A DNA stretch of 39,408 nt, from NCBI GenBank assembly GCA_002269645.1, contig NIVC01004649.1, positions 1 to 39,408 on the forward strand, in the 5' to 3' direction. Origin of the DNA: Macrostomum lignano. Taxonomy: Eukaryota. Made by a program: the position numbers and the translations under genes. The notes under the pieces were generated by a model that saw nothing but the letters and a program-made list of their open reading frames with translations, made no database searches and was not told where the DNA came from. The stretch's first letter is position 1, and each line of letters opens with the position of its first letter. Below, piece after piece: positions 530 through 39,074 of this stretch.

Positions 530-1330
530 GCGTCAAAGACTTGCCTCATCGCGGCGGTAGTCCTCCGAGCCCCTCCAGACTCACGGAGCGCGACAGCCCG
601 TACTGGCTGACACTGAGTCCAGACGGGCCAACGCCAAACGCCCAACAGCGAACTCTACGGGCTGTCGCCTTGGCCTCGAAACTTGCCACGGCAGATGGAG
701 AGAAGCTGCCGAGCCCGGCGTCAGTGAAGACAAGCACGTGCCGCTGGCCCGATGGGTCTCGTAGCAGCAGCTGCAGCAAGCCGTTAGCGCAGGCCCATCC
801 GCACTTGCCGCCTGATTCGGATCAGGGGCCTCGCAGTTTGTCACCGAGCCAAGCAGTCGCGCCTTGTCTGCTGGGCTCCAGCCGACGCCAGCCGTCTTTA
901 CGACACTTACTGACTGCGAGAACGTCACGCAGCATGTGGAGACATGCTGGTGGTCCAGAGCCTCTGCTAGCGATACCAGGCTGTGGAGCAGCATTGGACG
1001 CGACGATACAGTGCTAGATGTGAGGGAGACAGCTATGCCTACAGCAATCCTGCGCTCTGTGACTCTGTGCCTTTGTAGCCAGATTTTGTTGCTAGTGCCA
1101 TTTGTCATGAACCAGTTCATCAGGCCCCTGATGCTCAGCTTCTTGCCTCTGTTTGCCAGATGGTATCGCATCCGCGAGTGCTGGTTGGAAACTTGAATAC
1201 TGCTAATAATCCGGTTGGTGCATGGGTCCACTTTTGCCGCTAATTTCTTCCACATTTCATCCGCTGCATGGATTCCGGTGACATCGCTGAGTTCAGTTAG
1301 GTATCGCCGCATTTCGGGCATACTCAGGTT
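530..1330 (-). CDS. Midasin-type pre-MIDAS segment and VWA domain 2 (frameshifts near 800 and near 550)
   Basis: GKKLSIRGLMNW...KIWLQR...IAVGIAVSLTSS, CCVTFSQSVSVVK, HVLVFTDAG, RCWAFGVG, and LP..AMRQVF (midasin ends LP...LRQWF). Confidence 0.75.
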
Positions 1331-1589
1331 CGCTACTTCACCGGACAGATTTTCGTATTCGTGATATTGCGTCGTTATCTGTTCTTTGTTTAGCCCAAGG
1401 TCGTAGCCTTTATTTTCGCACTCGAGCCACTCTTCCAAAACAACCTGCCGGGGCTCGGGCACGAACTGACCGCATGGGTCTGGCTGGCTTTGCACTACTT
1501 GGGCATTAGCAGCATTGGTAATAAAGGAAAGTTCTTCAGTCTCGGGGCAGCAACGAAAGGGTTTTCTGGTCCGCTCCTTTCAATTCTTC

Positions 1590-2101: not shown

Positions 2102-4399
2102 TCAAATGCTGGACTTGAAACCAATTCGAGGGATCCGCTGTGAAGATAGAAGATTCCTGAGGTGGACGCTGGCTGGTCTTCTGTAAGAGCGTCGCGAGTG
2201 AATTGGAACGTGTGGGTGAGAGATCTCCACAAAAGTACCTGCTGTACTGGCTTCGTTATCTGAGTCGTCTATTCCAGCACTGAACTCTTGCATCCCAACC
2301 TCCAGCTCCGCGTCAACGTTCGATCGCGGACTAAATTTCATAACCCGACCGGTTGCTATTTCTGTCGATATATCTCCGCCAACAGCACCTTCCACTATGC
2401 TGGCATCTGACAGATGACCAAGGTGGCCCCTTAAAGGATCAAAACTGCTATCAGCTGCATCGCTTTCTTCAAAATTGGTTGCTGTCGTAGAGGCAGCACT
2501 GGGTCCTTCTGCAGCTGATGCTGGGTTTCCCTCTTTTTCTATCTTTTGTGCATGCTCTGACATGAAAGTAGAATCTGGCTTGCCCTCAGCCGTTTCTTCC
2601 GGGAACGAATCAGTCGGTATTGGCGCTTTTAGAGCTGCACCAAATGCTTCTGACTTGGCTGTTTCTTCCTGTGCAGAGGCTCCTTTACTCGCTTCTGTTG
2701 GTTTTGTTTCTTCAGTTGATTTTTCATCAGGTTCTGTCGCAGCTTCAGATTCTTCTGCATTCGGAGGTTTCATTTCGCTTTGATCTGTTTCCCTGCTTTC
2801 TTTTCTTTCTTTATCATTGATATCGCTCGTTTGGTTTGTATCACTCGGTGACTTACTTTCGGTATTCTGACCAGCTTGCTTTTCTTTTTCTGTCGGTTCC
2901 GAATCGTTTGGTGCGAAAGTTTCCTCTTCAGTCTGTAGCTGGTCAGTTTCTGATTCTTCTTGCGAATCTTTAGCGGATTCCACATCGCGAGAGGTTTCGT
3001 TCTTGTTCGTTTTCTCAGAATACGACCCCACTTCTCCTTCCTGTTCTCTTTGCTCGGAACGGGATTCTGCTGCCCCGGCTTCTTCTACTGGCTGACTCTG
3101 TTCATCACTAGTTTCCAATGGATCACTATTTGGACTGGATTCAACACATGAAGAGTCACTGTCCTTATGCTCTAAGAGCTCCTCCGCAGAAGACTCATCC
3201 TTGGGTGCCGTCCCGCCAGACTCGCTTCTTTCAGTCCCCGAGCCCGAAGGATCCGCAGACTCTGTCTGGCCAGACCCGCTTTCATTGGTTCCTGAGCCGG
3301 AAGGATCTGTAGACTCTGTCTGTCCAGACCCGCTCTCATTGGTTCCCGAGCCCAGAGGATCTGCAGACTCTGTCTGGCCAGACCCGCTCTCATTGGTTCC
3401 TGAGCCGGAAGGATCTGTAGACTCTGTCTGTCCAGACCCGCTCTTATTGGTTCCCGAGCCCAGAGGATCTGCAGACTCTGTCTGGCCAGACCCATAGCCA
3501 CCAGTCGAGGAGTCTTTTGCCTCCGACTGGCCCATGATTTGCTCGTCGGTCCCCATTGAAGGCGGAGGACTTTCAGTCAGACCGCTCTTCTCTGCATCAG
3601 CAATGGCCTCCTTGGCATTCTGAACTTTGTCCATCCACTTTTTGATTTCTTCTCCTCGCGGTCCAGCCAGGTCACTTTCAGTGGGCTGAGGATCTGAGCC
3701 TCCGCCTTCATCCAGCGAAAATCTATCAGCGTAGCTGTTAGCGATCGCCGACTTTAGCTCCTTTCTTAAATCCTCTTCCTTCGTAGTGGAGCTGAGAGCA
3801 AATCTGAATGCGCCGCTTGCATCTTTGTTGTTGATATTTGCACTATAGGACACAACTGTAGCTGCTTCTGTCCCATCCTCTTTTCCTCCAGAAATCACCA
3901 GTTCTTTCATCGGATTTTTCTCACGACTGTCCAACTCAGCTTATTTCTCGATTTCCTTCTCGTAGGCATCAATGCCGCAAATTGCCGACTGAACAAAGTC
4001 CACCCCTTTTATAATCGCGTGTGTTGCGGCACGAGCAAGCTGCAGAAGTACCTGGCAAAATTGGTAAAAAAGCCACTTGATTCCCGAGTTTGATTCGACC
4101 TTTTCCCTCATCTTCTTGATGCTGTCATCCAGCTTTTGCTCCAATTTCTTGAGAAGTTTTCGAACGCTACTGATTATTTCTTTGATTAATTTCTTTATAC
4201 TGAACGTGCTGTTCAGTCGGATGTCCCAGTCAAGAAATCTCCGCTGGTTCTCTCGTTCACCAAAGTTTAGCATTACTTCGACGGAAATAATTTTGAAGAA
4301 AGTGACCTTAAACCACGCGTAGAAGCACTTTTTGGCGGTGTCTGTCTCTATTTTGGCAGCTACTTCGATAATAAAAAATATGCTCACTTTGACGTCCAT
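2102..4399 (-). CDS. Amphipathic/coiled helices followed by an acidic D/E/S-rich low-complexity tract; in-frame TAA at 3941-3943
   Basis: KKLIKEIISSVRKLLKKLEQKLDDSIKK... is followed by EKEIEK*AELDSREK in one frame. The 610-aa E/S/D/T-rich ORF occupies the position of the midasin D/E-rich region. Confidence 0.75.
3228..3495 (-). repeat. In-frame 54-bp (18-aa) tandem repeat x5: SGSGQTES(A/T)DP(L/S)GSGTNE
   Basis: CAGACCC recurs at 3271, 3325, 3379, 3433 and 3487, a period of 54. Confidence 0.95.
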
Positions 4400-7300
4400 C
4401 AGGAATTTTAGTCCGTTGCTTTGCTCACAACAAGTGCAGCTTTGGCCCCGCCTTGCCGTCGGTGCTGCTCACCTCAAGCAGGTCGAGCAATTTAAGGGCT
4501 CTACGAGCTCACCTCCGAACTCAATCTTCTTATCTTCGCCATGAAAGGTAAAGCCTCCCCATAGTTAGCGTTCATCCGAGCCAGTTGATGGCCGCATCGA
4601 ATTTGACGCACGGTCCAATCTCATATCTTTCCGTTAAGCCTTCCGGGTTGCCTCCGCCTACGTCTTCCGGTGTTCTGACAGCTTTTTCAGTCATTTGCTG
4701 CTGACCGTCAGGACGGACGAAATTTTATTGACTCCATATTTTCATTGGCGGCGAGATAAGAAAAAAAAATGGTTGAAGCCCGGCAGCAAGAAGTCAACGT
4801 GTTCGCAAGACTTCATCAACGCCAAGAAGCTTTAGAAGATTGGAAAACCGCAGGGTCTTCTCTCGTCTTTTGAAATCGGAAGTAAGCCCCTACAGGAACG
4901 ACACGAGTAGGTTAACCAAATCTTTTTTCTTGTCATGAATCTAATGCGAAACTCAATGTCGCTCTCGAACAACTTCATGGCAGCTGCTACTTCAAAGCTT
5001 AATGCGTCTGGCGGAACGGAAATCGAGAGCTGCATCGAAGCGGAGATCAGTGTTAAAAACTTTAGACCAAAGGGCGTTGGCCAGGCCAAGTCATTTCGCC
5101 GGTTATTTTCAAGTACCTGAAATTTCTCGCTTTTTGCCACTGCTTTCGATGCTAAGCCTGCCTGAAAACTCAGCTTTGTGTTTGGCGTTTCCTAAGAATT
5201 CGGTGGGAAGATTTATATTCATCTTGGCGTCCAAGAAAAGCTTGATTATTCCTTGAGTCTTCTTTAATAACTTGCCATCTGCATCAGTCTGCTTTGATGC
5301 CTCTTCAGCTGCTTTAATGTGCACGACTCCGAAGGAGATAAAGAGCGACACGCAACCAAACAGTTCCACCGAGCCGCACTCGATGTCCAAACTAAAGCCG
5401 CTGCTTACAACGCTAAGACAGCCAGAAAAGGTTTTTCCCGTCAAGCTTAGAAAGTCGTACAGCCAATTCTGCGGCATGGTCGCCTTGAATGACAAGACTG
5501 CAAATGGTGTTTGTTTAGTTTTCTTCACGCATTCAGTCACGAAAGTTGAATCGTAGTTCATTAATTGCTTCATTTTATCAGATGCCTCGCTCAGCCTTTC
5601 ACTGCAAATCTGTTCATTCGCTTTTTTAGAGCGCAGAAGCAGCACGAGCTGTAAGTTGTTGAACACTGGGATAAGCTCGATTGATTCGACCACTTCAAGA
5701 CCGTGCCAGATTTCGCTGAGTTTCCCTTCGTATACTACGCACACTAAGTAGAAGAATTCTTTTTTCGGGAATCCACCCGTCATTCCAACCTGAAACCCTT
5801 GTGGATTTCTGCAGGCAATCGCAAACTTCTTTTCCTTTAAGTAAACTTTCACCGCGGCTCCACTTTCTTTCAGGTTGACCTCCCCAATCCGAGCAAGGGC
5901 GCTGCTGAAGCAGCTGTCCAAGGAATCCTGGTCGACAATGCTGCTGGCTTGCAGCTTGCCGTCGGATTCACCGGCATCTGCCGTGAGCTTCGGCTGAGAC
6001 TTCTTCTGAAGTGTCAGCACACCGTTCGGCAGATCCAGCACCATGCCAAGCCGCAGCTTAAACAGGTCAAACAGGCAGAACAGCTTTCCTTTCCCGAATC
6101 GCCGTCCGCAGGCGCCTTGAACGCACCGAGCTCCTCCTCGCTCTGTGGCGTCTGATTAGCTTCATTGGTATTCTTTGCTCTTTCGAGCTTCAACTTTGCT
6201 CCAAGGCAAATAATTTTAAAAGGTTTTATCTGGCCCGTAGTCTCACCAATCACTTCTAATTCGAAAGAATTCAGTGTTCTGTCGGGCTGAATCTTGGCTT
6301 CAAAATGTAAGAGCTTGAATGTCAGATCAATTTTTTTACTTAGAGATTTAACTTGCTCCTCGAGTTTGAATTTCTCGGCAACAATTGCAGCCAAATCTCC
6401 CAGGCTAAAGTCGATCTTTTGTCGAGGAACAACTATGGTCCATGGTTGCTTTATCTCCAGGGGTAGCTCGACCTTGCAGTCTACGATTCGCAGGTGCTTC
6501 ACTTCAGGTCTTCCAAGACAAAATGCGAAGTTCAGAGTCGCAAGCTTGAAACTGCTGTCAAACTTTTTATCGCTGCCCTCTTCGCCATTCGCAGACGCGC
6601 CAGCTATTTCTTGCTGTTTCTTTTCAACTCGAATCTTCAAGTCCTCGAGTCGGAGTAAGGTGCAGTTTGGAATTAGGCAAAGCCGCTGCAGTCCGAGCAC
6701 AAGTACCCAAACATCGGGTTCCACCGCCTTCGTCCAGCTGAAATGAACTCCAACATCCGTAAGTATGAGGCCAAAGTCTGGCAGACTTGTCTTTAGCACA
6801 CGGCCAAACAGCTCGTTCAGTTTGATGTCTTCCGGAAGCCTTGCAGTGCTGCCGGTTCCGTCAAAAGATTCCGGCAATTCCAACAGCCAGCACTGGCGAC
6901 CTTTTTCAGCCGGTCTGTGGAATTTCAGTTTGAGCCTACCCAGTCTAAAATCAGCCAGGGTCAGGTCAGCTGTCAGCTTGAAGTCAGACGTCGCTGAGTT
7001 GGAGTAAGTCCACAAGAAATCGATTTCAACAGATCCCAGCTTCAGTAGACTTGTGAAAGGCAATCTCAGCTCCTTGATTTTTGCCTCAAGTGTCAGTTTA
7101 TGAGTCTGACTCGCGGCGGCTTTGCTTTCTTTACCAGACTCTCCAGCTTCTGATGACCCGGCTTTGATGGAACGGCTTTCTTGGCTGCTCTTCGATGCTC
7201 CAAGCTCTGTCCTGTTCTCGTACCTCACTCTGAGCTTCTCAAATTTCACGAACTTAAGAAGTGGGACGTCAACTAGACTTGAGTTGATCTTCAGCAGTTC

Positions 7301-10264
7301 AGCAAAGGGTTTTATTAGTTCCACCAGAGTAAATTGGGCTTCAATATGAGCATTCAATGTGAACTGCATTGAGTCCTTGTCTCTTTTAACTTCTGACACG
7401 TAATCTAGGATGGGCAGAGTAAGGAATTGGATTTTTCCTTTAAGCGAGACCTGAAAGTGCCTGTCCTGATCGAAACTGGTTACTTTCATGCTGAATTCCG
7501 AATCTGTGAGCTCAATCTTCATCAGGCCTTTCTTCAATTTAATCAAGTCAATTGTCATCGCCAGCTCGCAGGTTTTCTCTTTGAAGTCTAAATAGCCACT
7601 GACGAGCTTGTCAAGATTGGTTCTGACCAGCACTTCTGGTATTGCCTCGGCTGACACTTCGAAATTCTTAGACACAAACGTTTGAAGACTGAAAGTTCCT
7701 GTACCATTTTGACGCGGCAAGACCTTCAACTCGTTGCTGGATGTCAAAACAAATCTCGAGCCATTGTCTTCACATTTTAGTAGAAGCTGACAATCAAGAA
7801 TGTCGAATACGGCATAGAAAGTGCACTTCGTTGGGCTTTCAGTTCTTATCTGCACACAGAAGGCTTTGCCTGCTAAGAGCTTTGAGACTCTGAATGAGTA
7901 GCTCTTGGTCAGAGTTTCTAGTAAGAATCTCTTTAAGCTGTTGTCGAAATTCCACTCGATATCAACAGCTGTTTCGGTAAACTGCATTACTGATGGAACA
8001 CCGTAGTTGGACAGGTCAACACCCCGCCCCATGCATTCTGCCAGCAGGGACACTACGTCAGTACTTGAGTAGTGCGTTTTCAGATCGCACTGACTGACTG
8101 CCCAATGCTGGTCGTTGATGGGGTAGGAGGCGGACAGAGTTGGAGTTTTCAGCTTCGCGCAGTTTCCCAGCTCCAGAACCATTGACAGACTTGGATAGCG
8201 GAGCATTTCGTCAATGAGGGTGTGCACCTCTCCTCTGCTGGTGCTCAGCTCTATTTCTGTAAGAGTCAACATAGGGCTGAGGCTGACGGGCTTCATATTA
8301 AGCATCATTTCTAATTCTTTTGGCTTCGTCCAATCGTTCCACTCCATCGAGTAGTTGCATTTTTCAACCATGACTCCTCTAGTGGCTTCATTCTCTCGCG
8401 ACAGCCGGCTCGCTACAAGTACAGAAAGGTCGAACGGCTCAATAGATTTGTCATCGGTTTGTAGCTTCCAACAAGTTCTTTTTTCTGCATTCCTATCCGC
8501 TGTCTGACACTGCAACTTGTTCTCATGCTCACACAGTAGAATGCTGAAGTGTCCTAAGTTCTGTCCGTGCAGAATGAGATCTCCCTCAATCAGGCTGCCG
8601 CACCATTTCTGATGCGCGGCCTTCCTTCCATGGTTCCGCAACACCATGCTGACTGACCGCAGCACAAGCTGGCTATCAACCTCGGAGTGAATGTCAGAAG
8701 AAGCTTTTGCTGTTAACTTTAGTTTCCATTTTGATATGTCAATGCGAATTTCCACTCCGCTGATTGGCACATTCGGGAACGGCTGCTGCACCTCCAAGTT
8801 CATGTCCTTCATTAGCTTGAGCAAGAGGCTTCCTCCATCATCTTTCGCCTGACTGGAAGAACAAAGCGTTAGTTGCAGCTGCTTGGACTTACCGGCCCCT
8901 GTTTCTTGTGCTCGTGTTATTTTTAAATCAAACTCGATGCCTAAAAGCGACAGCAGATCCATCTTTCCTTTTATGCGCACGACCATGTCCGACGGCTCCT
9001 TGCCCTCGATGACCAGCTGGGCCTCGTAAAACTGCATACTCGCTGTGTATTGATTCTGCATCTCGAATTTGGAGATTTGCGCTTCCATGCTGACTTGGCC
9101 TGATGAGTCAACCCGAAAGCTCTCCACACGATTGATCTGAGACTTTTCTGACAAGCCTGCCACCTCCTCGTCGGAGGCTTTGAAGATTTGCTTGATAAAC
9201 ATACGAAGATTAACTTTTTTCGTTTCCGCTATCTTCGATTGAAACTGAAGTTCGGCGATAATATCCGATGAAACTCTCGCGAGCTTGATGCCGAACATGC
9301 TCAAAACTCCCTTCACCTTGCACTTCCAATGCCCACTCGACTCGTGAAGATGCAGCTCTACTTCCCCTATGCTGAAAGGAAAATTTCGATTAGGTAGTTC
9401 GAGCGCTCGGTTTTCTGGCGCACTTATTATGACTCGCGCATCAGACTGCTGCTCTTTGATTTCCATGCTTTGTACCGATAAAGTCAAGACCTGCTTAGCA
9501 GAAAACCAACTTATGAAGGCCAGCGACTCAGGGACCTCTTCCAAGCAAAAAGAGATTATGCTGATTATCTTTGTGCTGCACTCAGCCTCAAAAGGGTCGA
9601 TTTTTAGCAGCGTTTGCGACATGTCGATTGTTCCTTTAAAAGTACTTTTCTTTTTTGATTCCTTAACCTGCATCTTGCCCGTTAGTAAAACAGTTTTCGT
9701 GTGTTGAATTTCCAGTTGAACGTCTTCGAAACTGAACAACTTGAAAGCCGGCCATCCATAATTGATTTTTTCATCGAAAGTCAGCTTAAAGAAGTTCGAG
9801 TCTTCAACCGCAGCAATCATAATTCTGTTGCATATTTCTTTTGCTCTTTCGTTCCAATATGGAATTTTGGTGGGCAGAAAATTTCTGAAAATAAAAACAT
9901 CGCTCGGTTTCAAGAGTTTGATTTGAAAGAAATCATCTCCCGAGGAGTTGGACTGAAGGCTGAGGTCGACCTCGTTTCCTTTTCTTGTATCTCCTGAGCT
10001 AAGCACAGCTTTTAGTTTGGCAGAGAAAACTCGCCTCTCCATATCAATAGAGAGTTTTCCGTGCAGATCCGACATCTTTACTTGGATTCCAAGAAACCGA
10101 TGGCAGTCAGCTGACTCTACAGCAAAACTGATATTTGCGAAGTCTTTTGAGCCACGGAGTAACAGTTTGTACCGCTGAGCTACCAATTGAAACTCATTGG
10201 TTTTGCTGCTTCCAATTTTGAATCTGGTATTGTGATAACACTCGCTTATTGCTCTAGTTAAATC
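4400..10264 (-). CDS. About 1,900-aa beta-strand-rich repetitive region of the giant protein (frameshifted near 6090, near 5120 and repeatedly in 4400-4930)
   Basis: ORFs of 1417, 311 and 102 aa show alternating hydrophobic/polar strands punctuated by short helices (VNLRMFIKQIF, FSLQTFVSKNF, FTLVELIKPF, IKLNELFGRVL, FSLGDLAAIV). It is in frame with the upstream part once the 950-bp insertion is removed. Confidence 0.7.
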
Positions 10265-11214
10265 CAATGGAGAGTTTACTACTTCTGTTTGCTACTTCTG
10301 GGTCAACTCCAGTGTTTTCCAAAATGAAGTTCTGGCCATCAGCTCCTGCACTGCAGAGCTTCTCGCCACTGGCGTTACTGGTAAGAACATCATTTTCCAT
10401 TCGGACAGCCAAGCTGCCTTGCACGCCATCAGTGGCTGCAGCACCAACTCTGCTACAGTCCTTGACTGTATCAAACTCCTCAATGTGTTGGGTTCCGCCA
10501 ACAAAATTACCCTTAAGTGGGTTCCGGGGCATGTGGGGATCCGAGGAAATGAGTTGGCTGACACCCTTGCAAAAGTTGGTGCCTCCGGCTCCTCTCTCGG
10601 CCCCGAACCTCTTGTCCCGATCCCTGGCTGTGTCATCGACTCGCGCATCAAAGCGTGGATCAGGACTCAGCACCGCTCGACTTGGGCGAACCGCACGAAC
10701 TGCAGGCAATCCAGAGGCGCTGTCCCTCAGCCCTCTCACCAGCTCCGGAAGCTCCTCTTGCGCCTCTCGCGCAGAGACATCCGGGCTGCCACCATGACCC
10801 TCTCTGGTCACGGCTGCTTCTCCAGGCACCAGTACCTGCAGGGCAACGCCACCAACGCCACCTGTAGTTTCTGCAACTCAGGTGACGAAACCGCTGAGCA
10901 TTTCGTCAGCATCTGTCCCGCCTTCACGCGGGCCAGACTCACTTACCTCGGGCCACACACATCTATTACTGAAGCGTGCAAACCCGAAAACTTTAATCAG
11001 CTCATGCGCTACCTTCGGGCCACCCGCAGGGCTGAACTCTCCTTTCCAGAGAGCACCATAGCTGCTGGCGACACTGGGGGACCTCCCTGGGCGGCGCCAA
11101 CCCTCCGTCCATAGCGACGCGTCGGCCGTTCAGGGACTAGCGGAATGGGCGCCCGCGCCTTCCCGCTGTGTCCCCTCCGGGACAGCCCTGCAGCTAAGTC
11201 AAGTAAGTCAAGTC
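10265..11214 (+). mobile_element. 5'-truncated non-LTR retrotransposon (LOA/R1/I-like clades): RNase H, CCHC knuckle, 3' UTR and (TAAGTCAAG)2 tail
   Basis: An open frame from ~10260 to 11114 reads SVFQNEVLAI...FHSDSQAAL...LKWVPGHVGIRGNELADTLAK (non-LTR RNase HI) and LSGHG...CSFCNSGDETAEHFVSIC (CX2CX8HX4C). It is GC-richer than its flanks. Deleting these 950 bp restores the host frame EKEQTDLTRAISEC. Confidence 0.9.
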
Positions 11215-13248
11215 TGTTTGCTCTTTTTCATTGCTAGAAAGATGAACTGGAATGTTTCCCTCCGCAAAGAGACCAATTCTAGCCTTGAATTCCCACATCG
11301 GCTTTCCTTTCTTTACTGTCATACTGAAGTTGCTGTCCGCGAAGTAAACATTTGCACTTTCACCGCTACCGTCTTTCAGCTGGTACTCTATGAGCTCGGG
11401 ATCCGAGATAGCAGTAGTTCTGCAGAGGAACTGGTTGAACTTCAATGATTTCACTACACTTGGCCCATCGAAATGTCTCAAAAATTTTGTAGGAACAGCA
11501 TTCTCCAAGCCAACACTTCCTTGTTCCAAATGAATATTAACAACAATGTTAGACCCACCGTATGAGCAGCAGAATTCCCAACTGAAATTAAGTGCTTCCT
11601 TTTCATTACTGGTAAGGTCACCGACTACTTTCCACAGGAAGTCTCCAGCCTTATTGTTGCAAAGCAAGTGCCGACACTTCAGTTCACTCTCGAATGGCAA
11701 AAGTATGTTGGTAATAGCAGGCTGAAAGTGTTCGGAGTGGGACAGCTTCACTTTTGCATGAGCCTCTGGATCCCTCTGCAGTCGGCTGATGGCACAGCCC
11801 ATGCTGCTGGTTACGCTCTGGATTTCATCGCCTACAAATTGGACAAGAGCTCTCTCTGCAGACTTCGACTTGCATTTCATTAAGACGATAATATCCATTA
11901 GCTTTCTGTCATGAATTGCCTCAACTTTTTGAACGGATTTTAAATTGAATCTGGGCGAGAGAATTCGTCCAGACATGTAGTACTCCTCTTTGTACTTCAA
12001 CGACTTCGACATCATTTCGCCCACCTGACATCTCAGCGTCTCATCAAAAATGTCTTCCATGAGACTCGACGCATCAAGCAGCATTCCATTTTCAATAAAA
12101 AATAAAATGTGTCTCAGATCTCTTGCGGTCACTTGCTCCCTTTTTGCCTTTTCTGACGTTTTAAAATTGTTGATGAGACGTCGAACGATGGAAGCAATTT
12201 CGTTGTTGCATAGAGTTCCATCTCTTAGCGGCGCGAACAGGTCAGGAAAGCAGTCCGTTTGCGGATCCAACTTGGGACAGAAAATCTCAATGCAGCGGTT
12301 GCGGAAAGATTCAGACAGCTGAAAGCTGCTACTTCTACCGATTGTTGCTGTGCAGATGAGAGCAAATCCAGGTTTCGGATCGATTCCGCCCTTCGGTCCG
12401 TCAGTGAGAGCCACTTCATGGACGTACAATCGCTGGCCCGACTCGCCAATGGAATTGAGCCTCTCGATCACCTCTGGTCTCGCGTGGTCAACATTGTCCA
12501 GCAGGATCCAGTTACCATTCTTCATCGACTTTACTAGAGGCCCGTCAACAAACTGAAAGCTGTTTTTGGAGCCACTGCTGACCGGGGAGAAGCCGCCAAT
12601 GAGGTCGCAGACGTCAGTATCAGCATGAACCGCAACAGTGACCAGCTGCTTGCTGCACCGCCGAGCCAGCTCCGCAACTGCGCTGCTCTTTCCGGAAACT
12701 GGAGGTCCCAGTAGAAGTAAGATTTTACCACTTCCAATCGATTGTTGCAGGAGACGCACGAGTCTGTCGGACGCGTCGCAAGGATTCAGCCTCTGACTTG
12801 AGTGTAAGAAGTCCCCGCGGCTGGTAAAAGCTCTCTTAGCTGTTTCTTCTGGAGACTCGCAAACAGCTAGTTTGCTTATCAGCTCCTGGGTTTCGGAACT
12901 ACTGGAAGAACTACATTCGCAGTATACAATACCAAGAGCTTCTTTCACAGTGTTATGCGCGTTCAACAAGCCGACAACCTTTTCTACATCTCTAAGGTTG
13001 AATTTACGATCAAAGTGGCCAGACGGGCATGCGTGATCTTTACAGCTAGCAACCATTTGCCAGTGAAATGAAGCCACTGCTTCAGTATTCGGACCAAATT
13101 CATTTCGAAACTTTTCGATTATTTCTTGCGTCTCTTTCTCTCCGATGACGTCCACGCTTACCTCCGTTAGCAGCTTTGACAGAGCTGGCGGCAGCTCCTG
13201 GCGTCCTCCGCCAGAACTTGCCGGGTTCATCGCGCACACAAACTGCAG
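11215..13248 (-). CDS. Start of the very large last exon: end of AAA5, AAA6 and post-ring segment, cut by a retroelement
   Basis: LQFVCAMNPASSGGGRQELPPAL resembles the midasin ATMNP motif. AAA6 has GPPVSGKS, FQFVDGPLVKSMKNGNWILLDNVD and SFRNRC. The ORF stops at 11194, inside the retroelement tail. Confidence 0.85.
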
Positions 13249-13386
13249 CTGCAATGCGACATGTTATAGAGAACAGAGTTTTACAGATTACACTTGACTA
13301 AACTTTCTGTATACAACTAGGAAACCCTAATGATGAATAACTCAATTTTCTATAATTTCAACAGCGTTGTGTCAATTGCTTCTTAC

Positions 13387-13451
13387 CTTTTTCAGGGAAT
13401 ATTCCTTAGAGTTCACAACCATCTTTGTGCCTTTAGGATGCTTCATGATCC
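13387..13451 (-). CDS. 65-nt exon within AAA5 (GIMKHPKGTKMVVNSKEYSLKK)
   Basis: Acceptor ttattttAG| at 13452 and donor AAG|GTAAG at 13387/13386. Phases 1 and 0 fit both neighbouring exons. The next acceptor is ttgcAG| at 13249. Confidence 0.75.
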
Positions 13452-13540
13452 CTAAAATAATTTCAGAGAACACTGGCAATCAAGCAAATGACATAAAACG
13501 ATAAAATGTACTTCTATTAAAAGCGATTTGTTCTGCTTAC

Positions 13541-16500
13541 CAATAATTGTGCTCAGAACATTGCTGGGAGCCAAATTAATTTCGTCGAATAAAATAACGG
13601 CTCCTTGATATTCATCGGGACTTTTCGGTTTTCTGCCCGCCATTCGAGCAGAGTCGGCCACTGCTGCCTGCTCCAGAATTGCACCCTCTCTGAATTGAAA
13701 CGTCATTTTGGTAGCTTTAGTTCCCGAATTCGAGTGCGCCGTTGGAACAAATGACCCAAATAGGTCTTCTTGAGAAAGATCACTAGAGCAGGAAATTCTG
13801 ATGAACTTCTTTTTGAGAACCGATTCTGCAAATATCCTCGTGATTTGGGTCTTGCCAACTCCCGGAGGTCCAACGAGGTTGACCACTGATTCAGTGTAAT
13901 GAGCAATTAGCAAGTGGCTAAGTACTTCTTTTGCCCGTCGGGTTACTGTCAGATCCTGACCCACTCTTTGAAACTCCTGTTCTGAGAATAGCGATGCTTC
14001 AGACAGAATTTCGTTTGGACTGTCACTTTGTGGAAATTCCTGCTTCAGGGCGAGACTAAAAGGTGATTTGCAACATTTTGGAGGAATTTTTGCAAATGAT
14101 GCCATGTTGACTAGGCTCTTCACACTCAGAATTCCATTTGAGAGTTTCAAGGCTTCGCTAAGGCCACGGTCGATGTCTTCCGACAAAGAGGAAGGGATAG
14201 ACGATTCTCTGCTCAGGATATCCCGAAAGAAGACTTCAGCCTCGCTGCCTCTGCTCACATCTGTCAGCTGAGGATCTCGCACATGAATCACTGTGTACCG
14301 CGACCTCATTGAGGGCGAGATGTCTTTGTCCGTTGGCAAAGAGATTGTGGCTATTAGTTTAAAGTTCACGCTCAAAGCGATCGGAGCATCAAACTGATGA
14401 GGATGAGTAAAGCTGGGCTCTAACTCGGTCACGCTGTTGAGGCACTCAATAACTGCCTGATCAGCAAGGTTAATGTCTCTCAGGAAGGCAATTCCACCGA
14501 AGCGAATATTTCTCATGATTCCCCTCTCACAGAAAGGAAAAATCTGAGATCCCGATGAGCAAAGGGACAAGTTTTGCAATGTTTCATGCGCGAACGCTGC
14601 ATCAGAGAGGAGGCATTGCTGAGGACAGCCGATAAAATCAGCTGAGTGCTGCTTCAGTATGTCGCAAAACTGACTTGACTTGCAGCTCTTCCATCTCTCT
14701 ACTGCAGGTGATTGCTTGAATGGGGCTGGTAGTTCGTTTGTAAGTCGATTTCTAAGCTTGGAGCAAGTGCTTTCGAAGTACGATGTGCATTTACTGAAGC
14801 TCTTTGCCTTGCTCGGATACCGCGTCATCAGCAACTGTGCAGCTGGATTGGCGCAAGTCTCTTCGAAGGACTCCGCTGAGTGCGGCTCGATCCCGCCAAA
14901 CAGATCTCGGGTCTCGGTTAGATCCGACATGTACAAAGTAGTCAGTCTGCAAAGCTCAGGAGCACCAAAGTCTACGATTTGAGTCAGGTGGCGCACCATC
15001 GTTGCTTTAAAATTCGTCCGGCCTTCGAGCACCACGGGCTCAGCGAAGTGGAGCGCCAGTGCAAGCTTGCAAAGGCTCAGCTGTTCGCTCCTTATCATGG
15101 GCTGCGGAAGGCTTTTCTGCAGCGCTTTCAGCTTCACAGACACAGTTGCCGACACAGCTGCATCTCGAAAGAAAATTTCAAAGAGCCAATCGTTTTCGAC
15201 GCATTCAATTTTGCAGTCCAAAACTGCTGCTTGAGGTGGAAATAGGTCCATCAAAACGGCAACGTGTAGCTTCACCTTTTCCAGCCAATTTTCTGCGCTC
15301 AAATCTTCCGTAATGGTGAGTCGTCTCACAAGCTTTAAAAGAGTTCTCAAGGTTGTTGAGTTCGATTGGTTGTGGTGACCCTGCAAATATTTAACAAGCT
15401 CTTGGATTCGAGTTCTCATCTCCGAGCTTGATAGCTCGCTACTAAAGAGATTTTTTGCCACATTTTTCATGAATGACCTTGCTCCGTGGTATAGTCCTGA
15501 TAGACTTTTTATTTCGCTGCTGGGTTTGTTCTGCTTCATCGAGTCTGCAAAACATGCTACTTTTCCGTAGAGGATGTCGACGATCTCATCGCGAGTGTAA
15601 TCTGGCACCGAGTACTTCACCAGTCTGGCCAGCACAGGTTCTGGAAGGCACTGTCTTCCAACATATTCTGTCGGATTTTGCGTACCCACAAAGGCAAACT
15701 CCGGGTGAACATCAAGCCATTGTTGTCGAATCGAGCAACGAAATTTGCTGCCACCGCTCAGAAGAGGCGTCAGATAGCTCGTGACTTCGGGCGATGCCAA
15801 ATTAAGCTCGTCCGCAATAAATATGCTTCCTTCTCTCATGGCCTTGCTCAGCGGCCCTTCTTTGAACTTGGCCTTCGTTCCATCAGGCAGATAGCAGCCC
15901 ATTAGGTCAGTAACAACTGTGTCCTTGTTGAACAGAAATATAACTGGCCTGGCCGCATAGCCTAAATGATTGCTCACTAGCTTTACAAGCGATGTTTTGC
16001 CTACTCCGGAGTGCCCTTCCAGCAGCACGGGAATCTTCATTCTGAGGAGAACCATTAACAGGCCAGCCAGTTTCTGTCGAGACTCCCCAAGAGTGTACAC
16101 TGGACTGTCAAGAATAACATTCTGTGTCCATTCGTGTTTGCATTCTACGGACGACTCAAGCACTAATTCTGCAATGCTTTCAACTACTTGAAACCAGTCA
16201 TAAAGAGAATAATTTTTGCCATCTAAAGCGATAGGCTTCTTGGCCAAGTAATTGGTTCCGTTTACGAATTGGGCTATCTTCCCGATCGAGGCGTAAATCA
16301 GTTTACATTTTATCGTCGAATCTTGTTCGCGCATCGGCAAGTGACGGAACATCAAGTCCAGAATTCTTCGAGCATTGTTTCTGCTCATTCGATTCGCGAT
16401 AAAGGATTCGACATCCGAGCTCAATATGTTTTCCGGCACGTCAAATATGACGAAGCGACTGAGGAACGACTGGGCCCAACTCGAATAGTTCGTTCTGACG

Positions 16501-16719
16501 CTGCTGACTGAATGTGGCGAGCACAAAGAAGCTTGGATCAACCGGCACCATCTTGCCGTCAATTAGATAGCGGCGCTCTGGCCCTGTCTCCAATAGTGCG
16601 TTCAGAGACTCCAAGACTGCCTTTTCTACCAAGTTAATCGACCTGAGTACCAGGCATTTTCCCTCTTTGATAGCTCGAGCTACTGGTCCGTCAACCCATT
16701 GGAATACGGCTCCTGAATC
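13541..16719 (-). CDS. Exon: rest of AAA2, AAA3, AAA4 (with insert), most of AAA5; one +1 frameshift near 16475
   Basis: AAA3: GHSGVGKT and FIADELNLA. AAA4: GRTNFKAT and FLRDINLA. AAA5: GPPGVGKT and ILFDEINLA. Removing one base from TTGGGCCC (16472-16477) joins FVLATFSQQRQNELFEL to (A/G)QSFLSRF. The exon ends at donor G|GTAAG (13541/13540). Confidence 0.85.
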
Positions 16720-16819: not shown

Positions 16820-19411
16820 CTGGGGCTGAAACTGTCCCACCAGATCATCAGTTGATGTTTCAGAATGGCAATAGTATTCCTCAAGTTCGATGTTTCTCTT
16901 CTTTGCCCAAATCCAAATGGCGGTGAATTTTCCCGAGAAGCTTTCCCCGACCAGCATGCCGGGCCTCTTCGTGTCATGACAGAGATCAAGATACTCCATA
17001 GTGTCGCTGTAGGTGCTGAGTACTGCCACTTCGCCAATTCTCAGGTCGGATAGATTTTGGGACACCTGCTTGGGTCCGAATTCCATTTGCAAACTTTCTT
17101 GAACAAGCGTATGAGTTTCTTCAGCTTGCGAAGCAGTATTTTCGCTGTGCCGAGAAAAAAGACACATGAGCCGGTTTGTCACTTCCTCGGGCTTAGAATT
17201 GATAATAATGTCTTGAGCATGCAGCAAATCTCGAAGAGTAACATGCAGTTTATCTTTGAACTTCCTGTAGATTGAAATCAGTTTATCGGCCATTTGAGTA
17301 TTGCCGTCTGAGCATCTGCCTTTTAATATTTTTTCGACATCATCATCAGGCAGCTTTGAAAAAGTTAAGCGGACAAAGTGGCTCATAAGAGACTTTGAGA
17401 AACGAAGACTGTCGAATCCAAAAACAACGACATTCGAATTTTGACAAAGGAAAAGGCGAAAGTTCGGGTGGCGTCGGTAGCACAGACATCCATTCTCCGC
17501 ATCTGACTGGCCGGCGATGAGGCTGTCCCGAATTTGCAGCATCCCTGTGTCCAGAACGTCCTCCAAAACCCGCAAAACAGCGTCACTCGCCAGATTGGCC
17601 TCGTCCAACAGAAGCCAATAGCCGTCCCTGACTGCTCGGGTAAAGATGCCTGGCTCGAACCGGAACTGCGATCCGGATCCCGAACCAGCGAATCGAACAC
17701 TCCCGAGTAGGTCTGCCGCGCTGGTGTGTGGTGACAGGGTAAATCGCAGCAGCGGGGCGCCGGAGATGGCAGCGCAATACCGAACTGAGAACGTCTTTCC
17801 TGTGGCTGGTTCGCCTTCAATAAAGACGGGCATGTTGGAGTTGATCAGCAGTAATAGGCGCTCAACATTTTCTTTGGTCCGGTCAGTAAATACGAAGTTC
17901 ATTGTTTCGTGGCTCTCAACCGCTTGTTTCATGCTTTCTGAAATTTCCGATGGAACACTTTCTAGACTTTGTCTTGGCAGTCTTATTCGCAAGTGATCGT
18001 CGAAGAGCTCCTCAACTTCTAGCTCTCTATTTTCGTGGATACTCAGAAAGAGCTCCTGTACAAAATAATTTTCTTGAGGTAGCTTTCCTTGGAGTTTCAA
18101 ATGCTTCGTAAGCTTCTCGTGGCTGAACTCAGACATCAGAGTATCCATGTACTTTTTGTCACTCCTTTTCCCTGCTTTGATGAATGGCAGAAATCTGTTT
18201 TTGTCTTTATTTGCTTTAGTTTGTTGTTGCTTTTTCGCAGTCGGCTGTGTAATACCAACAGGTGTGGGTAGCGGTCGACTAGACCTCACGCTCCACCTAT
18301 TGCTTTTGCTTTTCTTAGCCACCTGCTGCTCCAGAACAGTCACCTTTTGATCCACTGAGCCTATGATAATGTCAAGACATCGCGCGTCCAACACCTCATC
18401 TGGCAAAGCGACCTCATCGGAATCTTGCTTTAACTTCCGGATCTGAATCACTGACTCTTCGGATGGGTTCACCAAATAGTAGGCGTTCTCGAGAGGATCC
18501 GTGGCCAGCCTTATTGGAGCATCGAGTGCTGCTTCACCGGCCTGAGTGACGTCCCAGTCAACAGACAGAGCAATCACATCGGTCGCGGTTAAGCTGTCGA
18601 CAATACAGCCCTCGGCTTTGAAAATGGCATCGATTCGGTCACTCTGGTGACCAAGCCGGGCGGTGCATAACTTCCAAACCCGCTGATGCAGAACGACCAT
18701 GCGAAGGAGAAGCTCATCATTCAAGTTAACAAAGACAGCGCCTTTAACATCCGATCGACAATAGATGGTTGGAGTTTGTTCTTTCAGGGGTACTAGATAG
18801 AATTGCATTCGGTTCGAACTGTCCTTAGCAAATATTGTGGCGAAATCGGAATTCTCTGAAACCTGATAGTGAAGCACCGATCTCAGGCTCAACTTGTGCT
18901 CTAATCGAAGGTCATGCTGGTCGAAACCAGCTTGATTGTTCTTGTAAACCCTGATTCCAGCCCAGTGGTGAATCAGAGTGCTTTCGGTTACTACAGCAAA
19001 AACATCGGTGCTAAGCCACACTAGCTTTAGCGCTTTCTCAGCCTGCAACGAGTGCACAGCAACGGGAGACCATGGTGAGCTCGAGGCAAAGTCGAATACT
19101 AGTACTCGATCGGCAGAGTTTCTTCGAACCACAACCGCAAGCCTCGAAGTCGTATCGTTCGGTACGGTGTGAACAATGGCGTCATTGCCACACTCGGGTA
19201 TGACGAATCGGCGAAGCGTGTAAGATTCCGGGTCAAAGACAGTCGTGCAGTTCACTTCAGAGCCCTTCAGTCCCAGAATATCCGGTAAACTGTACGAACT
19301 GTGGATAACGGCCGAAGTCTTCGTGAAGAACACATCGTGCAGTTTATAGTTCTTGTCAGGACCGACCACGTCAAGTCTGAAGGGGAAGTTATCCCCTTCC
19401 ATGCCTGAGAG
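16820..19411 (-). CDS. Exon: clathrin-terminal-domain-like propeller, AAA1, and the start of AAA2
   Basis: AAA1 has Walker A GEPATGKT, FRFEPGIFTRAVRDG and Walker B WLLLDEANL. AAA2 has Walker A GESFSGKF and STDDLVGQFQPQ. The exon ends at donor CAG|GTGAG (16820/16819). Confidence 0.85.
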
Positions 19412-19585: not shown

Positions 19586-20580
19586 ACTTCATCCCAGGTC
19601 ACTGCACCCCATCCCAGGTCACTGCACCCTATTCCAGATCACTGCACTCCATTCCAGATCACTGCACCCCATCCCAGGTCACTGCACCCCATTCCAGATC
19701 ACTGCACCCCATCCCAGGTCACTGCACCCCATCCCAGGTCACTGCACCCCATTCCAGATCACTGCACTCCATTCCAGGTCACTGCACTCCATTCCAGGTC
19801 ACTGCACCCCATCCCAGATCACTGCACCCCATTCCAGGTCACTGCACCCCATCCCAGGTCACTGCACCCCATCCCAGATCACTGCACCCCATCCCAGGTC
19901 ACTGCACCCCATCCCAGATCACTGCACCCCATTCCAGGTCACTGCACCCCATCCCAGGTCACTGCACCCCATCCCAGGTCACTACACCCCATCCCAGGTC
20001 ACTGCACCCCATCCCAGATCACTGCACCCCATTCCAGGTCACTGCACCCCATCCCAGGTCACTGCACCCCATCCCAGGTCACTGCACCCCATCCCAGATC
20101 ACTGCACCCCATTCCAGGTCACTGCACCCCATTCCAGGTCACTGCACCCCATCCCAGGTCACTGCACCCGATCCCAGGTCACTGCACCCCATCCCAGGTC
20201 ACTGCACCCCATCCAGGTCACTGCACCCCATCCAGGTCACTGCACCCCATCCCAGGTCACTGCACCCCATCCCAGATCACTGCACCCCATCCAGGTCACT
20301 GCACCCCATCCAGGTCACTGCACCCCATCCCAGACTGCACCCCATCACCAGGTCACTGCACCCCATCCCACCACCATTCCAGGTCACTGCACCCCATCAC
20401 TCAGATCACTGCACCCCATCAGGTCTGCACCCCATTCACTGCAGGCAGTCTGCACCCCATCCCAGATCACTGCACCCCAATCCCAGTTCACTGCACCCCA
20501 ATCTCATGTCACTGCACCCCATCCCAGGTCATTGTGCCCCAATCCCAGTTCACTGCAACCCATCTCAGGTCACTGCACCT
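19586..20580. repeat. 20-bp minisatellite (ATCCCAGGTCACTGCACCCC), ~50 copies, degenerating rightwards
   Basis: Direct reading. Variants ATTCC, CAGATC and CACTCC occur, and units shorten to 19 bp or become irregular after ~20200. There are no spacers. Confidence 0.97.
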
Positions 20581-25072: not shown

Positions 25073-27051
25073 CTTAAGAATCTCAATCCAGAGAAGTTTC
25101 TTTTTTTGAGACACTCAACTCAAAGATTCGGATTGCTTTGAAAAAATGAAAACAAAAAAATCTACCCCTCATAATATGAAACGGCTCTAATGTTGAGTTT
25201 GACATACAAATCTGGATTGGCTCATTATCCATAAGAGTTTTCAAACGTGGATTTTCAGTAAAAATCGCAACAGCCCAGTCAGCACCTGTTCACCCGCTAA
25301 AATTAATATCAGAAAGGTCTATAAGGCAAATCAAGCTTGAAATCTGGATCAGTAATCAGGATTATATCGACATGGGATAAATATATATGAGAGCTCCATC
25401 AGATTTGGTCCCAGTTTGAGAGGCTGGAGAATCTGGGGAGCGGGGATTTAAGAAAAATGAGCGGGGCCAGTATTTTATAGAAGCTGGCAAAAGAAGACCC
25501 CGGGAGCATAGAGGAGAAATCCCATAGCATAATCCCCCCCGCCAAAGCCGAGTTCAAGTCTTCCACTGTCCGCGCGGAGCTGCGCAGCGGAAAAGCGAAT
25601 TTTTAATGACTTTAATTAGTCTTAAGTCTTCCAGCCGGCTCGGCACAGCGGCCCGATGAAAGTGAATTATTCAGAGCCTGGAAGATCCCCGTCTCCCTGA
25701 AAGACCGAGCTCTCTCTGCCCATCACCCTTCGAATGCTTGCGGTGCCATCAAACAGGCGGGCCGGGGGCATAACTCACCTGTAATTAACTGATAGGAGGA
25801 GGAGAATAGGCCTTCCCACTTTTCATCCCGCCTCGAAAGCTCCATGGATCCGACCCAACCCCCCCCCCCCAACCGGAGCGGCTGCGGTCTCCCCGGGGAG
25901 ATTCCGGTTGTAGCTGAGTTATGGCCGCGTTTCCTGACGGCAGCTCGGCCTTGTCCGGCCATTTCTACTCTAATTCACCTGAGATTGCTCCGGCCGAGGC
26001 TGTGAAAGCTAAAGCGGACCAATTTGCCTAATGGCTTATGGAAGCCGAGGCCATTAGTTATGCAGCCGCGGCACCAGCCGCGGAGCAACAGGGATCGGCG
26101 GGTGTGGCGAGTTCCTGCCCTGACAAATCTCTGCACAGTGTGTAGATAAAACACACACTTGCTGTATATATCCTTTATAGCTTGTATAGCCCCCCCCCAC
26201 TTTTAATTCTGAGTAGTGGTGGCCTTTCAGCTAGATCTGGAGCGATCGCAATTCACCGCCACTCCCCAATCAAGATCACACAAAGATTTATTGCTCCGCA
26301 CAGTCACTCCGCTTCTTTCATGCTCAGATTCAGCTGATCAACCGAATTATAACACCTTGCGCCGTTTCTTCTCTTTCAATCTAAAAATAAAAGCAGATTT
26401 GCTCAATTCTTCAGACAGAGAGTGTGCAAATATTTATCAACTACAAGCGTATATTCATAGGTTGGAGATTTCGTTGTGTCAATTTTCTGTCGCGTGGCAG
26501 AAGAGCAGTGAGAAAAAAGCAATGAGTTGAGAGGCGCAATCAATTAGATTGAATTGTCTTCGGGCAAATATATGAGAGCTGCCAATGGGTGTTTGACGAT
26601 GTTTGACCCGCCTTGGCTCACAGCATGAAATTCAGGCCCCAACAGTTTGGGGTCTCTTTGGTCTCTGTAAAGGAAATATTGATGAGGATTTGGGATTTCT
26701 TTGTAGGGGTGTATAGGGAGCGCTCTCGCATTGGCTGGACCGCAGTCAGACTCCTCCCCCTTAGAGTTTTCCAATTCCAGCTATTCCTCATCTCTGCTCT
26801 ACCCCTCAGAGCCTGAGCAGCCTCGCATTCTCGCTCCGACACTGGGGAGAAGCAGAAATTCTTAGGGGGGGGGGAGTTTGAGTCCGCGGGCAGGCCGCGA
26901 CCAATGGGATCCTGAGCAGGAGCTTTGGGAGGAGCGGAGGCTGGGACTCCCATCGGAAATAGCTGCATCACCTGTCGGCTCTGGCATCGAATTTCGACTC
27001 GATTGTTCAGGCTCTTCCTTCCTCAACCGCCTCCGGCCTCCAGCCTCCAGC

Positions 27052-28275
27052 ATGACAGCTCCGTACTTTGCCCACTTCGGCCGCAGGCCACCGTGGCTGC
27101 AGCAGGGCAGCTTCGGCCGAATTCCGCCTCCGCCGCCTCCGCCGCTGCCGCCGCCGCCACCGCAGATGTTTCCCAACATCGGTTGCCATCCTTACAATTT
27201 CCCACCTGGACTTCATCCGCACGCTTCTGCCGCGCCGTTTCTTGACCCGCTCAACATGGTGCACCTGAACTGCTTGATGCAGCAGTCGCTGATGCCGCCG
27301 CATCCTCTGCCGTCGCCGCTGCCTCCCCCTCCGCCGCCACCTCCTCTGCAGCGACCGCCGCAAGCAGCGATGCACGAGTTCTTGAACAGCAAATTGCCAT
27401 TGAAGTCACCGCCATCGAATTCGCCGCCGCATCCCCTGCCGCCGCCGCCTCCGCCACCACCTCCGCCGCCCCCGCCGCCACCGCCACCAAAGTCCCAGGC
27501 GGGCCCGAAACGAAAGGCAACTCGTCGAACAGCGGCGCCGAAGGACGGCGACAACGACAACAGAAGCCCGGTGAGCGGCACCCTCATTCGCAAGCTGACG
27601 GACAAGGACGGTGTCCGTCAATCGGCCGACATCCCCGAGCCGTCAAAGTTCGTGGCCGTCACGCCGGAGACCAAAGCGCAGCTTGCCAAGATAAAAAATG
27701 TGATTGGCGACTTCGACTGCCAGCTGTGCTCGGTGAAGTACCCGGACGCGTTCCAACTGGCCCAGCACCGCTGCCCGGGAATCGAGCACATCCACTACAA
27801 ATGCGAGGACTGCGACAAGTCGTTCAACTGCCCGGCCAACCTGGCCAGCCACAAGCGCTGGCATAAGCCGAAACCGCCGGGCGGCTCGCTGAAGAGATCG
27901 AAAGACTCAACGGTTGCAACGGGCAAACCGGCCGAGATCTCAACGCCGCGACAGTCGAAACCCTATCCGTTCAGAATCGAGGACATCCTGCTTGATTCAG
28001 CCAGCTGCAGGCCGGGAGGCAAGCGAGGGCGTCAGGACGTTAAGCCGGAAAAGTTAGAAACGCCGTCAAAAACTGACGACATCGATGCCAGCGACACCAG
28101 CTCCGCCGGTGACAGCTCGATGGATCGCTGCATCTGCGGCTGCCTGCTGACTAAGCAGGAGCTGGAGGAGCACATGCTGAAGCACCTGATGGAGAAGGCG
28201 GCCTCTGTGAAAGCCGAAGCTCTCGAGAGACAGCAGCAGCAGCCGGTGTTCCCGGAGCCACTGACAGACAATTAA
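27052..28275 (+). CDS. insm1: INSM/nerfin/egl-46 family C2H2 zinc-finger transcription factor, intronless, 407 aa
   Basis: SPVSGTLIR...KAQLAKIKNVIGDFDCQLCSVKYPDAFQLAQHRCPGIEHIHYKCEDCDKSFNCPANLASHKRWHKP (fingers 27712-27870) is the diagnostic INSM finger pair. The first in-frame ATG is at 27052 (cagcATGA), with an in-frame TAG at 26863. The N-terminal half is proline-rich. Confidence 0.93.
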   Translation: MTAPYFAHFGRRPPWLQQGSFGRIPPPPPPPLPPPPPQMFPNIGCHPYNFPPGLHPHASAAPFLDPLNMVHLNCLMQQSLMPPHPLPSPLPPPPPPPPLQRPPQAAMHEFLNSKLPLKSPPSNSPPHPLPPPPPPPPPPPPPPPPPKSQAGPKRKATRRTAAPKDGDNDNRSPVSGTLIRKLTDKDGVRQSADIPEPSKFVAVTPETKAQLAKIKNVIGDFDCQLCSVKYPDAFQLAQHRCPGIEHIHYKCEDCDKSFNCPANLASHKRWHKPKPPGGSLKRSKDSTVATGKPAEISTPRQSKPYPFRIEDILLDSASCRPGGKRGRQDVKPEKLETPSKTDDIDASDTSSAGDSSMDRCICGCLLTKQELEEHMLKHLMEKAASVKAEALERQQQQPVFPEPLTDN

Positions 28276-33600: not shown

Positions 33601-33854
33601 TTAAACGAGTCAAGTTTAAAAATTTTTAATCTACAGTGAAACAAAAAATTTTAGTGAAAAGCACAAGCAATGGCAGCTATTGATTGTTACGTCAAAAATT
33701 TACAGTTTTTAAATTTAGTATAAGTTTTATTTTCATGAACAGAATAAAGGGGTAAAGTCTGTTAACGTGCAGCTGCGCAAATCCAAATCTGGTCACTGGC
33801 CAGCCGTGTGCTCGATGACCACGAACACACACGTGTAGCCTAATACATGTACTA

Positions 33855-34130: not shown

Positions 34131-34492
34131 CCATTTATGGCGCATGACCAAGATAGCCACACTAAGATGGCCACAGCTCTAAATGTCTTAATAAGATAAT
34201 AAGAAACCTGAGGTCTATATATTTAATTTATTTCCTATTGGTAGCAATTTTTATTAGGTATAGATCTTCAAGTCTTAGAGAGATAGATGCTATTATAATG
34301 GAATTATATAAGTCTAGTATAAAAGATACCTTATTGCATATTTATTACATTTTTTGAATATTATTATCATTAGCAATGATTTCTTGATAAACAAATAATA
34401 ATAGATTTGATAGATATAATGATAGAGGCCTAGGCCTAGGGAATAAATTGGCATACAAATTCAAAAAGATTATATATAAAGTTTTTATATTA

Positions 34493-39060: not shown

Positions 39061-39074
39061 AAAAATTCTATCTT

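Follow-up and report, generated by a model that had tools for sequence, protein, structure and literature searches.

We analysed a window of 39,408 nucleotides from Macrostomum lignano (contig NIVC01004649.1 of assembly GCA_002269645.1, forward strand, positions 1 to 39,408), whose minus strand carries the gene for a giant, fast-evolving protein of the midasin (Rea1/MDN1) family of AAA+ ATPases. An earlier reading of the letters alone, hereafter the original prediction, had proposed that 18420-19411 encodes a clathrin heavy-chain terminal-domain-like propeller fused to the AAA ring, and this N-terminal region is our subject. The interval lies at the start of an 885-codon open reading frame (ORF) on the minus strand, 19402->16745, whose translation begins MEGDNFPFRLDVVG. 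The gene as a whole spans about 19402->581, and every long ORF in that span is on the minus strand. Searched exhaustively with phmmer, a set of 1.84 billion representative proteins yielded the window protein itself (P0001, UniRef100_A0A1I8JC40, an 'AAA_5 domain-containing protein' from Macrostomum lignano) and a single homologue of the N-terminal domain, P0002, at 29-30% identity. The window is therefore nuclear DNA of a flatworm; its repeats and base composition had hinted at a protist, an origin excluded by the UniRef match. When P0001 was mapped onto the window, amino acids (aa) 1-861 fell within a single exon, 19402..16820, which ends in a GTGAGC splice donor and is followed by a 100-nt intron. 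The parts of the gene, with the evidence for each, are as follows.

18263..19402, minus strand: N-terminal all-beta domain, putative seven-bladed beta-propeller (aa 1-380); open frame contiguous with AAA1, homology to P0002, AlphaFold2, Foldseek, hhalign and a hidden Markov model (HMM).
17906..18262, minus strand: K/Q-rich low-complexity linker (about aa 381-410) and pre-AAA1 segment (about aa 411-499); aligns with P0002 399-495.
16820..17905, minus strand: AAA module 1, the start of module 2 and the end of exon 1; Pfam AAA_5, midasin match in the PDB, motif scan and exon mapping.
11194..16719, minus strand: the remaining AAA ring (modules 2-6), in several exons; AAA_5 matches, midasin matches in the PDB and Walker A motifs.
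2102..10829, minus strand: long Pfam-less region at the position of the midasin linker, then an acidic, Ser/Thr-rich tail; ORF layout, Pfam scan and PDB search.
581..1495, minus strand: C-terminal MIDAS-like domain with a degenerate metal-site motif; sub-threshold PDB match to 6qt8_A.

Our results support the view that the N-terminal region forms a conserved all-beta domain of its own, joined within one exon to a midasin-type AAA ring. The first AAA_5 module lies at aa 525-627, within the ORF and exon that encode the N-terminal domain, and the fusion is therefore real; on this point the original prediction was right, with the exon 19402..16820 carrying both the head and an AAA_5 module. P0002 comes from a 6.5-kb Logan contig (L001) of run SRR28338163, with an uninterrupted 1932-codon ORF. 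Because this ORF continues unbroken across the position of the M. lignano intron, we take the contig to be a spliced transcript. P0002 begins MATDEFPF after an in-frame upstream TAG, and the M. lignano protein begins MEGDNFPF; the stop upstream of the P0002 start thus marks the ATG at 19402 as the true start, with no upstream exon missing. An upstream exon that might have supplied the roughly 30 clathrin residues absent here was considered and rejected, given the upstream stop in P0002, the matching starts and a 20-bp tandem array directly upstream.

Identity between the window protein and P0002 is 29-30% across aa 1-380 and 34% over 1544 aa, so that the domain appears to evolve about as fast as the rest of a fast-evolving protein. 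Motifs common to the two include FDP..T.RRFVI, PWSP, W.S....A.VT, CRSD..GA.F, W.LCT, YY..NP.EES and WS...SRPL, and conservation extends to the WS..SRPL motif at aa 370-378. A metagenome scan for relatives found none. Word-indexed protein searches, with the N-terminus and with the two-sequence alignment, gave no match, not even P0001 or P0002 themselves, which the index seems to lack; since the exhaustive search had found both, these negatives say little about this family.

Midasin is generally seen as a single-purpose machine that is highly conserved and whose N-terminal domain is small and helical; MDN1 is a single essential gene acting on pre-60S particles. As judged from sequence, the overall layout of the M. 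lignano protein is that of a midasin in divergent form, an orthologue or paralogue of MDN1. Pfam AAA_5 matches the first three ORFs at E-values of 1.2e-14, 3.1e-35 and 1.7e-17, and midasins (E 1.6e-87, 2.6e-58 and 6e-83) are the only multi-AAA relatives that these ORFs have in the PDB. Modules 3 and 4 of P0002 match AAA3 and AAA4 of S. pombe Mdn1, in order. Module 1 has the Walker A motif GEPATGKT at aa 530 and the Walker B motif LLLDE, and is closer to midasin AAA5 or AAA3 than to AAA1. The Walker A motif is intact in four modules (GEPATGKT, GHSGVGKT, GPPGVGKT and GPPVSGKS) and degenerate in module 2 (GESFSGKF at aa 819, within 16820-17905), and module 4 has none that is recognisable (within 13452-16562, minus strand); GxxGxGKT-type motifs are present in all the canonical midasin modules that were matched. 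Together with the midasin alignments, the four intact motifs and the recognisable degenerate one suggest six AAA_5 modules in one chain. Weak matches to bpMoxR (PF20030) on the AAA modules fall below the Pfam cut-off.

The public gene model of this protein differs from the window in the same region. A0A1I8JC40 treats 912 nt at 13883-14796 (minus strand) as an intron; the frame is open there and P0002 aligns through it (FPFCERGIM..RDINLADQAV..), and for these two reasons the model probably loses about 300 residues of AAA module 4. It is also truncated, at 1604 aa.

Downstream of the ring, about 2900 codons contain no Pfam family at E <= 0.01, and the largest ORF among them, 6014-10267, has no sequence match in the PDB. 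The region at the linker position is followed by an acidic, Ser/Thr-rich tail, in which a 54-bp (18-aa) coding repeat, SGSGQTES[AT]DP[LS]GSGTNE, is present in about 5 copies (3215-3493, minus strand). The last ORF, 581-1495 (minus strand), has as its best PDB match the metal-ion-dependent adhesion site (MIDAS) domain of Rea1, 6qt8_A, at a sub-threshold E of 0.31 (13.6 bits), with an alignment that includes GKKLSIRGLMNWF...KIWLQRHR against GKRLNIKKIIPYI...KIWMRR. Its metal-site motif reads S-L-T-S-S where Rea1 has D-D-S-S-S, and with DxSxS thus replaced the MIDAS site may be inactive. A search of the gene's ORFs for VWA or midasin-specific Pfam families detected none.

At the other end of the protein, a small helical N-terminal domain directly before AAA1 was not what we found: AAA1 is preceded by about 500 aa, of which the first ~380 are predicted to be all beta. 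In canonical Rea1, the N-terminal domain directly before AAA1 is alpha-helical; it stands in for the small domain that AAA6 lacks, and scaffolds AAA6L against the linker stem (PMC6286127). The order in the M. lignano protein is instead about 380 residues of beta structure, the K/Q-rich linker, roughly 90 residues and then AAA1, and by analogy of position the midasin helical domain may correspond to the pre-AAA1 segment (about aa 411-499). The all-beta domain is thus an addition that canonical midasin lacks.

We used AlphaFold2 and Foldseek to ask what fold this addition might have. The model from a single sequence reached a mean predicted local distance difference test score (pLDDT) of 45.7 and a predicted template modelling score of 0.43, and the model from the two-sequence alignment reached 52.8 and 0.52, with pLDDT of 70-83 at aa 70-150 and 170-200. 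Both models are nearly all beta, and in the better one about 27 strands are evenly distributed along 375 residues. Seven four-stranded blades would have 28. In Foldseek searches of 350,542 PDB chains, yeast and human clathrin terminal domains filled ranks 1-6 for the first model (best E 8.5e-6) and seven of the eight leading places for the second (best E 1.4e-6). On these models it is quite likely that the N-terminal domain folds as a propeller, and the strand count suggests a closed one with seven blades. The domain exists, is kept in a second species, shares one exon with AAA1, is predicted to be all beta and has clathrin as its leading structural match. Our reading of the region, which we hold at an even balance, is that aa 1-~380 of this midasin-family protein most likely form a seven-bladed propeller whose nearest detectable relatives are clathrin terminal domains.

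A different outcome, which we consider improbable, is that the domain is not a closed propeller at all, being some other beta-rich fold or a partly disordered, fast-evolving extension, with the propeller matches arising as artefacts of poor models. In its favour, mean pLDDT is 46-53, with aa 1-49 and 252-380 below 50, template modelling (TM) scores are below 0.5 for all Foldseek matches, and the family is very small and diverging fast. Against that, the roughly 27 strands are regularly spaced over about 375 residues, as fits 7 x 4, nearly all of the listed Foldseek matches are propellers, conservation with P0002 reaches aa 370-378, and the core of the better model has pLDDT of 70-83.

Whether the likeness to clathrin extends to sequence was examined with human CLTC 1-364 as the reference (100% identical to PDB 6qnn) and with a clathrin terminal-domain profile of 32 diverse sequences, 49-97% identical to human. 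The original prediction rested on paired motifs. Those of the query are all present in the order given (DPESYTLRRFVI at 57-68, HSLQ...HHW at 117-147, FDQH at 160-163, VLHYQ at 176-180, RMQFYLV at 198-204, KLCTARLG at 244-251, DAPIRL at 294-299 and YYLV at 308-311), the clathrin motifs are likewise correct, as checked on CLTC 1-364, and the quoted pairs are collinear. BLASTP against CLTC aligned one 20-aa segment only, WLSTDVFAVVTESTLIHHWA (E 0.029 for one comparison), and a Smith-Waterman alignment gave z = 2.6, a score reached by 12/500 shuffles. The clathrin HMM scored 7.9 bits on the window protein (reached by 1/5000 shuffles) and 4.3 bits on P0002 (7/5000), in both at the same place in blade 3. 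When the window's ORFs in all six frames were scored with this HMM as 228 pieces, the N-terminal one came first at 7.8 bits, and the next scored 3.9. In hhalign, query 49-148 aligned in register with CLTC 49-131, corresponding to blades 2-3, with a score of 33.4 and E 1.1e-3; no column shuffle out of 60 reached that score, one block shuffle out of 60 did, and the best off-register match was 18.9.

Thus, of the collinear clathrin alignment claimed over aa 1-327, the similarity in blades 2-3 exceeds chance, but the rest is not significant. The DAPIRL/YYLV region, for example, gave E 0.16 in hhalign (query 273-312 against CLTC 238-277), and the motifs HHW, FDQH and RMQFYLV, on which the prediction had also drawn, are not kept in P0002. 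The first ~30 clathrin residues have no counterpart in the window protein, despite its complete N-terminus. The sequence signal is weak: it is adequate as a test of one pre-chosen family and would fail a database-wide correction. A check with HMMER and Pfam for the clathrin propeller repeat, which the prediction had suggested, did not yield a significant match, the weak signal being confined to single-family tests. The sole Pfam match to the N-terminus, RNA_pol_L at E 0.096, was treated as noise, as were TRPM2 and Cas7 from the PDB sequence searches of the N-terminus.

Several of our results weigh against the reading of a clathrin-like propeller. Model confidence is low, with means of 45.7 and 52.8 and pLDDT below 50 in the C-terminal half, aa 1-49 and 252-380 also being below that value. 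The clathrin matches in Foldseek have TM scores of 0.33-0.42, root-mean-square deviations of 10-14 A and identities of 10-14%, and the E-values of non-clathrin propellers trail the best clathrin value by no more than about 3-5 fold: 2gop at 4.6e-5 against 8.5e-6 for the first model, and for the second Bulli/RMC1 (8c7g_A) at 4.0e-6 and a UTP WD40 protein (9n78_LH) at 6.5e-6 against 1.4e-6. The hhalign probability for query 49-148 is only 20%, neither global hhalign nor semi-global pairwise comparison with CLTC produced a meaningful alignment, Pfam searches of the N-terminus of both homologues (Clathrin_propel included) returned no relevant family at E <= 10, and PDB sequence searches with the single sequence and the two-sequence profile returned no clathrin chain. 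Nor are the structural and sequence lines fully independent, since Foldseek's 3Di+AA comparison and an AlphaFold model from a shallow alignment may reflect the same weak signal. The domain is known from two flatworm-type sequences only. Lastly, as given below, most clathrin residues known to bind adaptors are replaced.

A rival reading gives the propeller another origin, generic, WD40-like, protocoatomer-like or Bulli-like, or newly made from blade repeats, its likeness to clathrin then being a matter of fold geometry and a chance motif in blade 3. Such an ancestry is possible, though we think it rather doubtful. The closeness of the non-clathrin E-values speaks for it, as do the confinement of the sequence signal to about 100 residues at an hhalign probability of 20%, the loss of HHW, FDQH and RMQFYLV in P0002, and the one block shuffle in 60 that equalled the real hhalign score. 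What it explains less readily is that clathrin leads both Foldseek searches although the PDB holds far more WD40 than clathrin chains, that the in-register profile match scores 33.4 and the best off-register match 18.9, and that no WD40 or other propeller Pfam family appears even at E <= 10. The original prediction had counted it as a refutation if other propellers ranked level with clathrin or above it; clathrin ranked first for both models but with a small margin, and by that measure the outcome is borderline. A clathrin-type ancestry is in our view plausible and unproven, and its probability lies somewhat short of even.

The proposal that this head is clathrin-like thus stands in part: an all-beta domain, the first rank of clathrin in Foldseek and the profile match in blades 2-3 favour it, but pLDDT and TM scores are low and the sequence signal is weak. 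The proposal had gone further, to a true clathrin terminal domain that binds the clathrin-box motifs of adaptors and links an AAA+ motor to endocytosis or coat remodelling. For this, the leading structural match to clathrin terminal domains can be cited, and so can two residues of the groove between blades 1 and 2, R64 and F91, which align to R65 and F/Y103 in both flatworm proteins and are retained. The residues mutated to abolish the peptide-binding sites of clathrin are T87/Q89/K96/K98 for the clathrin box, site 1, and Q152/I154 for the W-box, site 2 (PMC7041688). In a low-confidence alignment, the four site-1 residues are not conserved, aligning to R/L/S/P in the window protein and V/F/R/P in P0002; in the same low-confidence alignment the W-box pair is not conserved either, aligning to S/L and S/S respectively. 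The groove is therefore conserved in part, with R64 and F91 kept but T87/Q89/K96/K98 replaced, and the low confidence of the alignment makes this test weak in both directions. No coat-related domain occurs in the rest of the protein, which is midasin-like; midasins function in ribosome maturation (PMC6286127). We regard binding to clathrin-box adaptors as very unlikely, and the full reading of an adaptor-binding clathrin domain on a coat-remodelling motor as highly improbable; the endocytic link is unsupported.

Our main reading also gives the domain a probable role, drawn from its position in the motor. It immediately precedes the segment that is packed between AAA6 and the linker stem in Rea1, and from this position it would hang off the junction of ring and linker. 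Propellers commonly serve as protein-docking platforms, and most simply this one would tether the motor to a target or partner, while the ring and tail would do the mechanical work. We put forward, tentatively and as rather unlikely on present evidence, that a propeller of the clathrin terminal-domain type was captured by a midasin-family motor in macrostomid flatworms, serves as a peptide-motif docking head directing it to a new, non-ribosomal target, and would be the first terminal domain known outside the clathrin heavy chain. The case rests on two sequences and low-confidence models and is a lead, not a discovery. Its significance is that a lineage-specific midasin relative in which a propeller has been gained, and two ATP sites and the MIDAS motif have degenerated, would be evidence that such a giant motor can be adapted to different work. 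Were the propeller indeed derived from clathrin, it would be a rare reuse outside clathrin, and a natural system in which to see how peptide-docking propellers recruit force-generating ATPases.

Other features of the window lie outside this gene. A 20-bp tandem repeat at 19590-20579 (consensus CATCCCAGGTCACTGCACCC, about 50 copies, 87% matches) lies ~190 bp upstream of the start codon and gives rise to long, spurious plus-strand ORFs. A 21-bp tandem repeat of about 24 copies at 30035-30541 overlaps a Pfam-less ORF, 30031-30762, which is probably a repeat artefact. On the plus strand, a 465-aa ORF at 26878-28275, in a GC-rich stretch, has a single C2H2/zf-met zinc finger (E 8e-6) and is possibly a neighbouring gene. 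From 33000 to 39408 the GC content falls sharply, to 28-33%, compared with 46-52% across the gene.

Literature searches on the SRA run, on Macrostomum with midasin, and on a clathrin-like propeller with AAA returned nothing, and we compare the protein here with the systems that it resembles in part. It is like midasin in being one polypeptide with six probable AAA_5 modules, a region at the linker position, an acidic tail and a weak C-terminal MIDAS match with GK+L.I+..KIW. It is unlike midasin in adding an all-beta N-terminal domain of ~380 aa, where Rea1 has only the alpha-helical one (PMC6286127), and in having a degenerate Walker A in module 2, none recognisable in module 4 and a degenerate MIDAS metal motif. 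Its module 1, moreover, is closer to AAA3/AAA5 than to AAA1, and it has no VWA Pfam match.

The seven-bladed clathrin terminal domain (1bpo, 6qnn, 9ext) is its leading Foldseek match, is similar in length and strand count, and matches it in register in the profile of blades 2-3 (DP..RR.I, W.S...A.VT...H). However, identity is 10-14%, Clathrin_propel does not match and the adaptor-binding residues are not kept. In clathrin a helical linker and the CHCR alpha-solenoid leg come after the domain, whereas in M. lignano the parts that come next are a low-complexity linker and AAA_5 modules; neither the Clathrin nor the Clathrin-link Pfam family was found in the gene's ORFs. The propellers of Bulli/RMC1 (Mon1-Ccz1) and of the UTP WD40 proteins (small-subunit processome) have comparable Foldseek E-values, 4.0e-6 and 6.5e-6, but in both searches they rank below clathrin, and no sequence-level signal was seen for them. 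As an analogy only, the prokaryotic MoxR-vWA-beta-propeller ternary systems (PF20030, bpMoxR) likewise bring together a MoxR/AAA_5-class ATPase, a vWA/MIDAS module and a beta-propeller; unlike those of the M. lignano protein, the three modules there are separate bacterial proteins.

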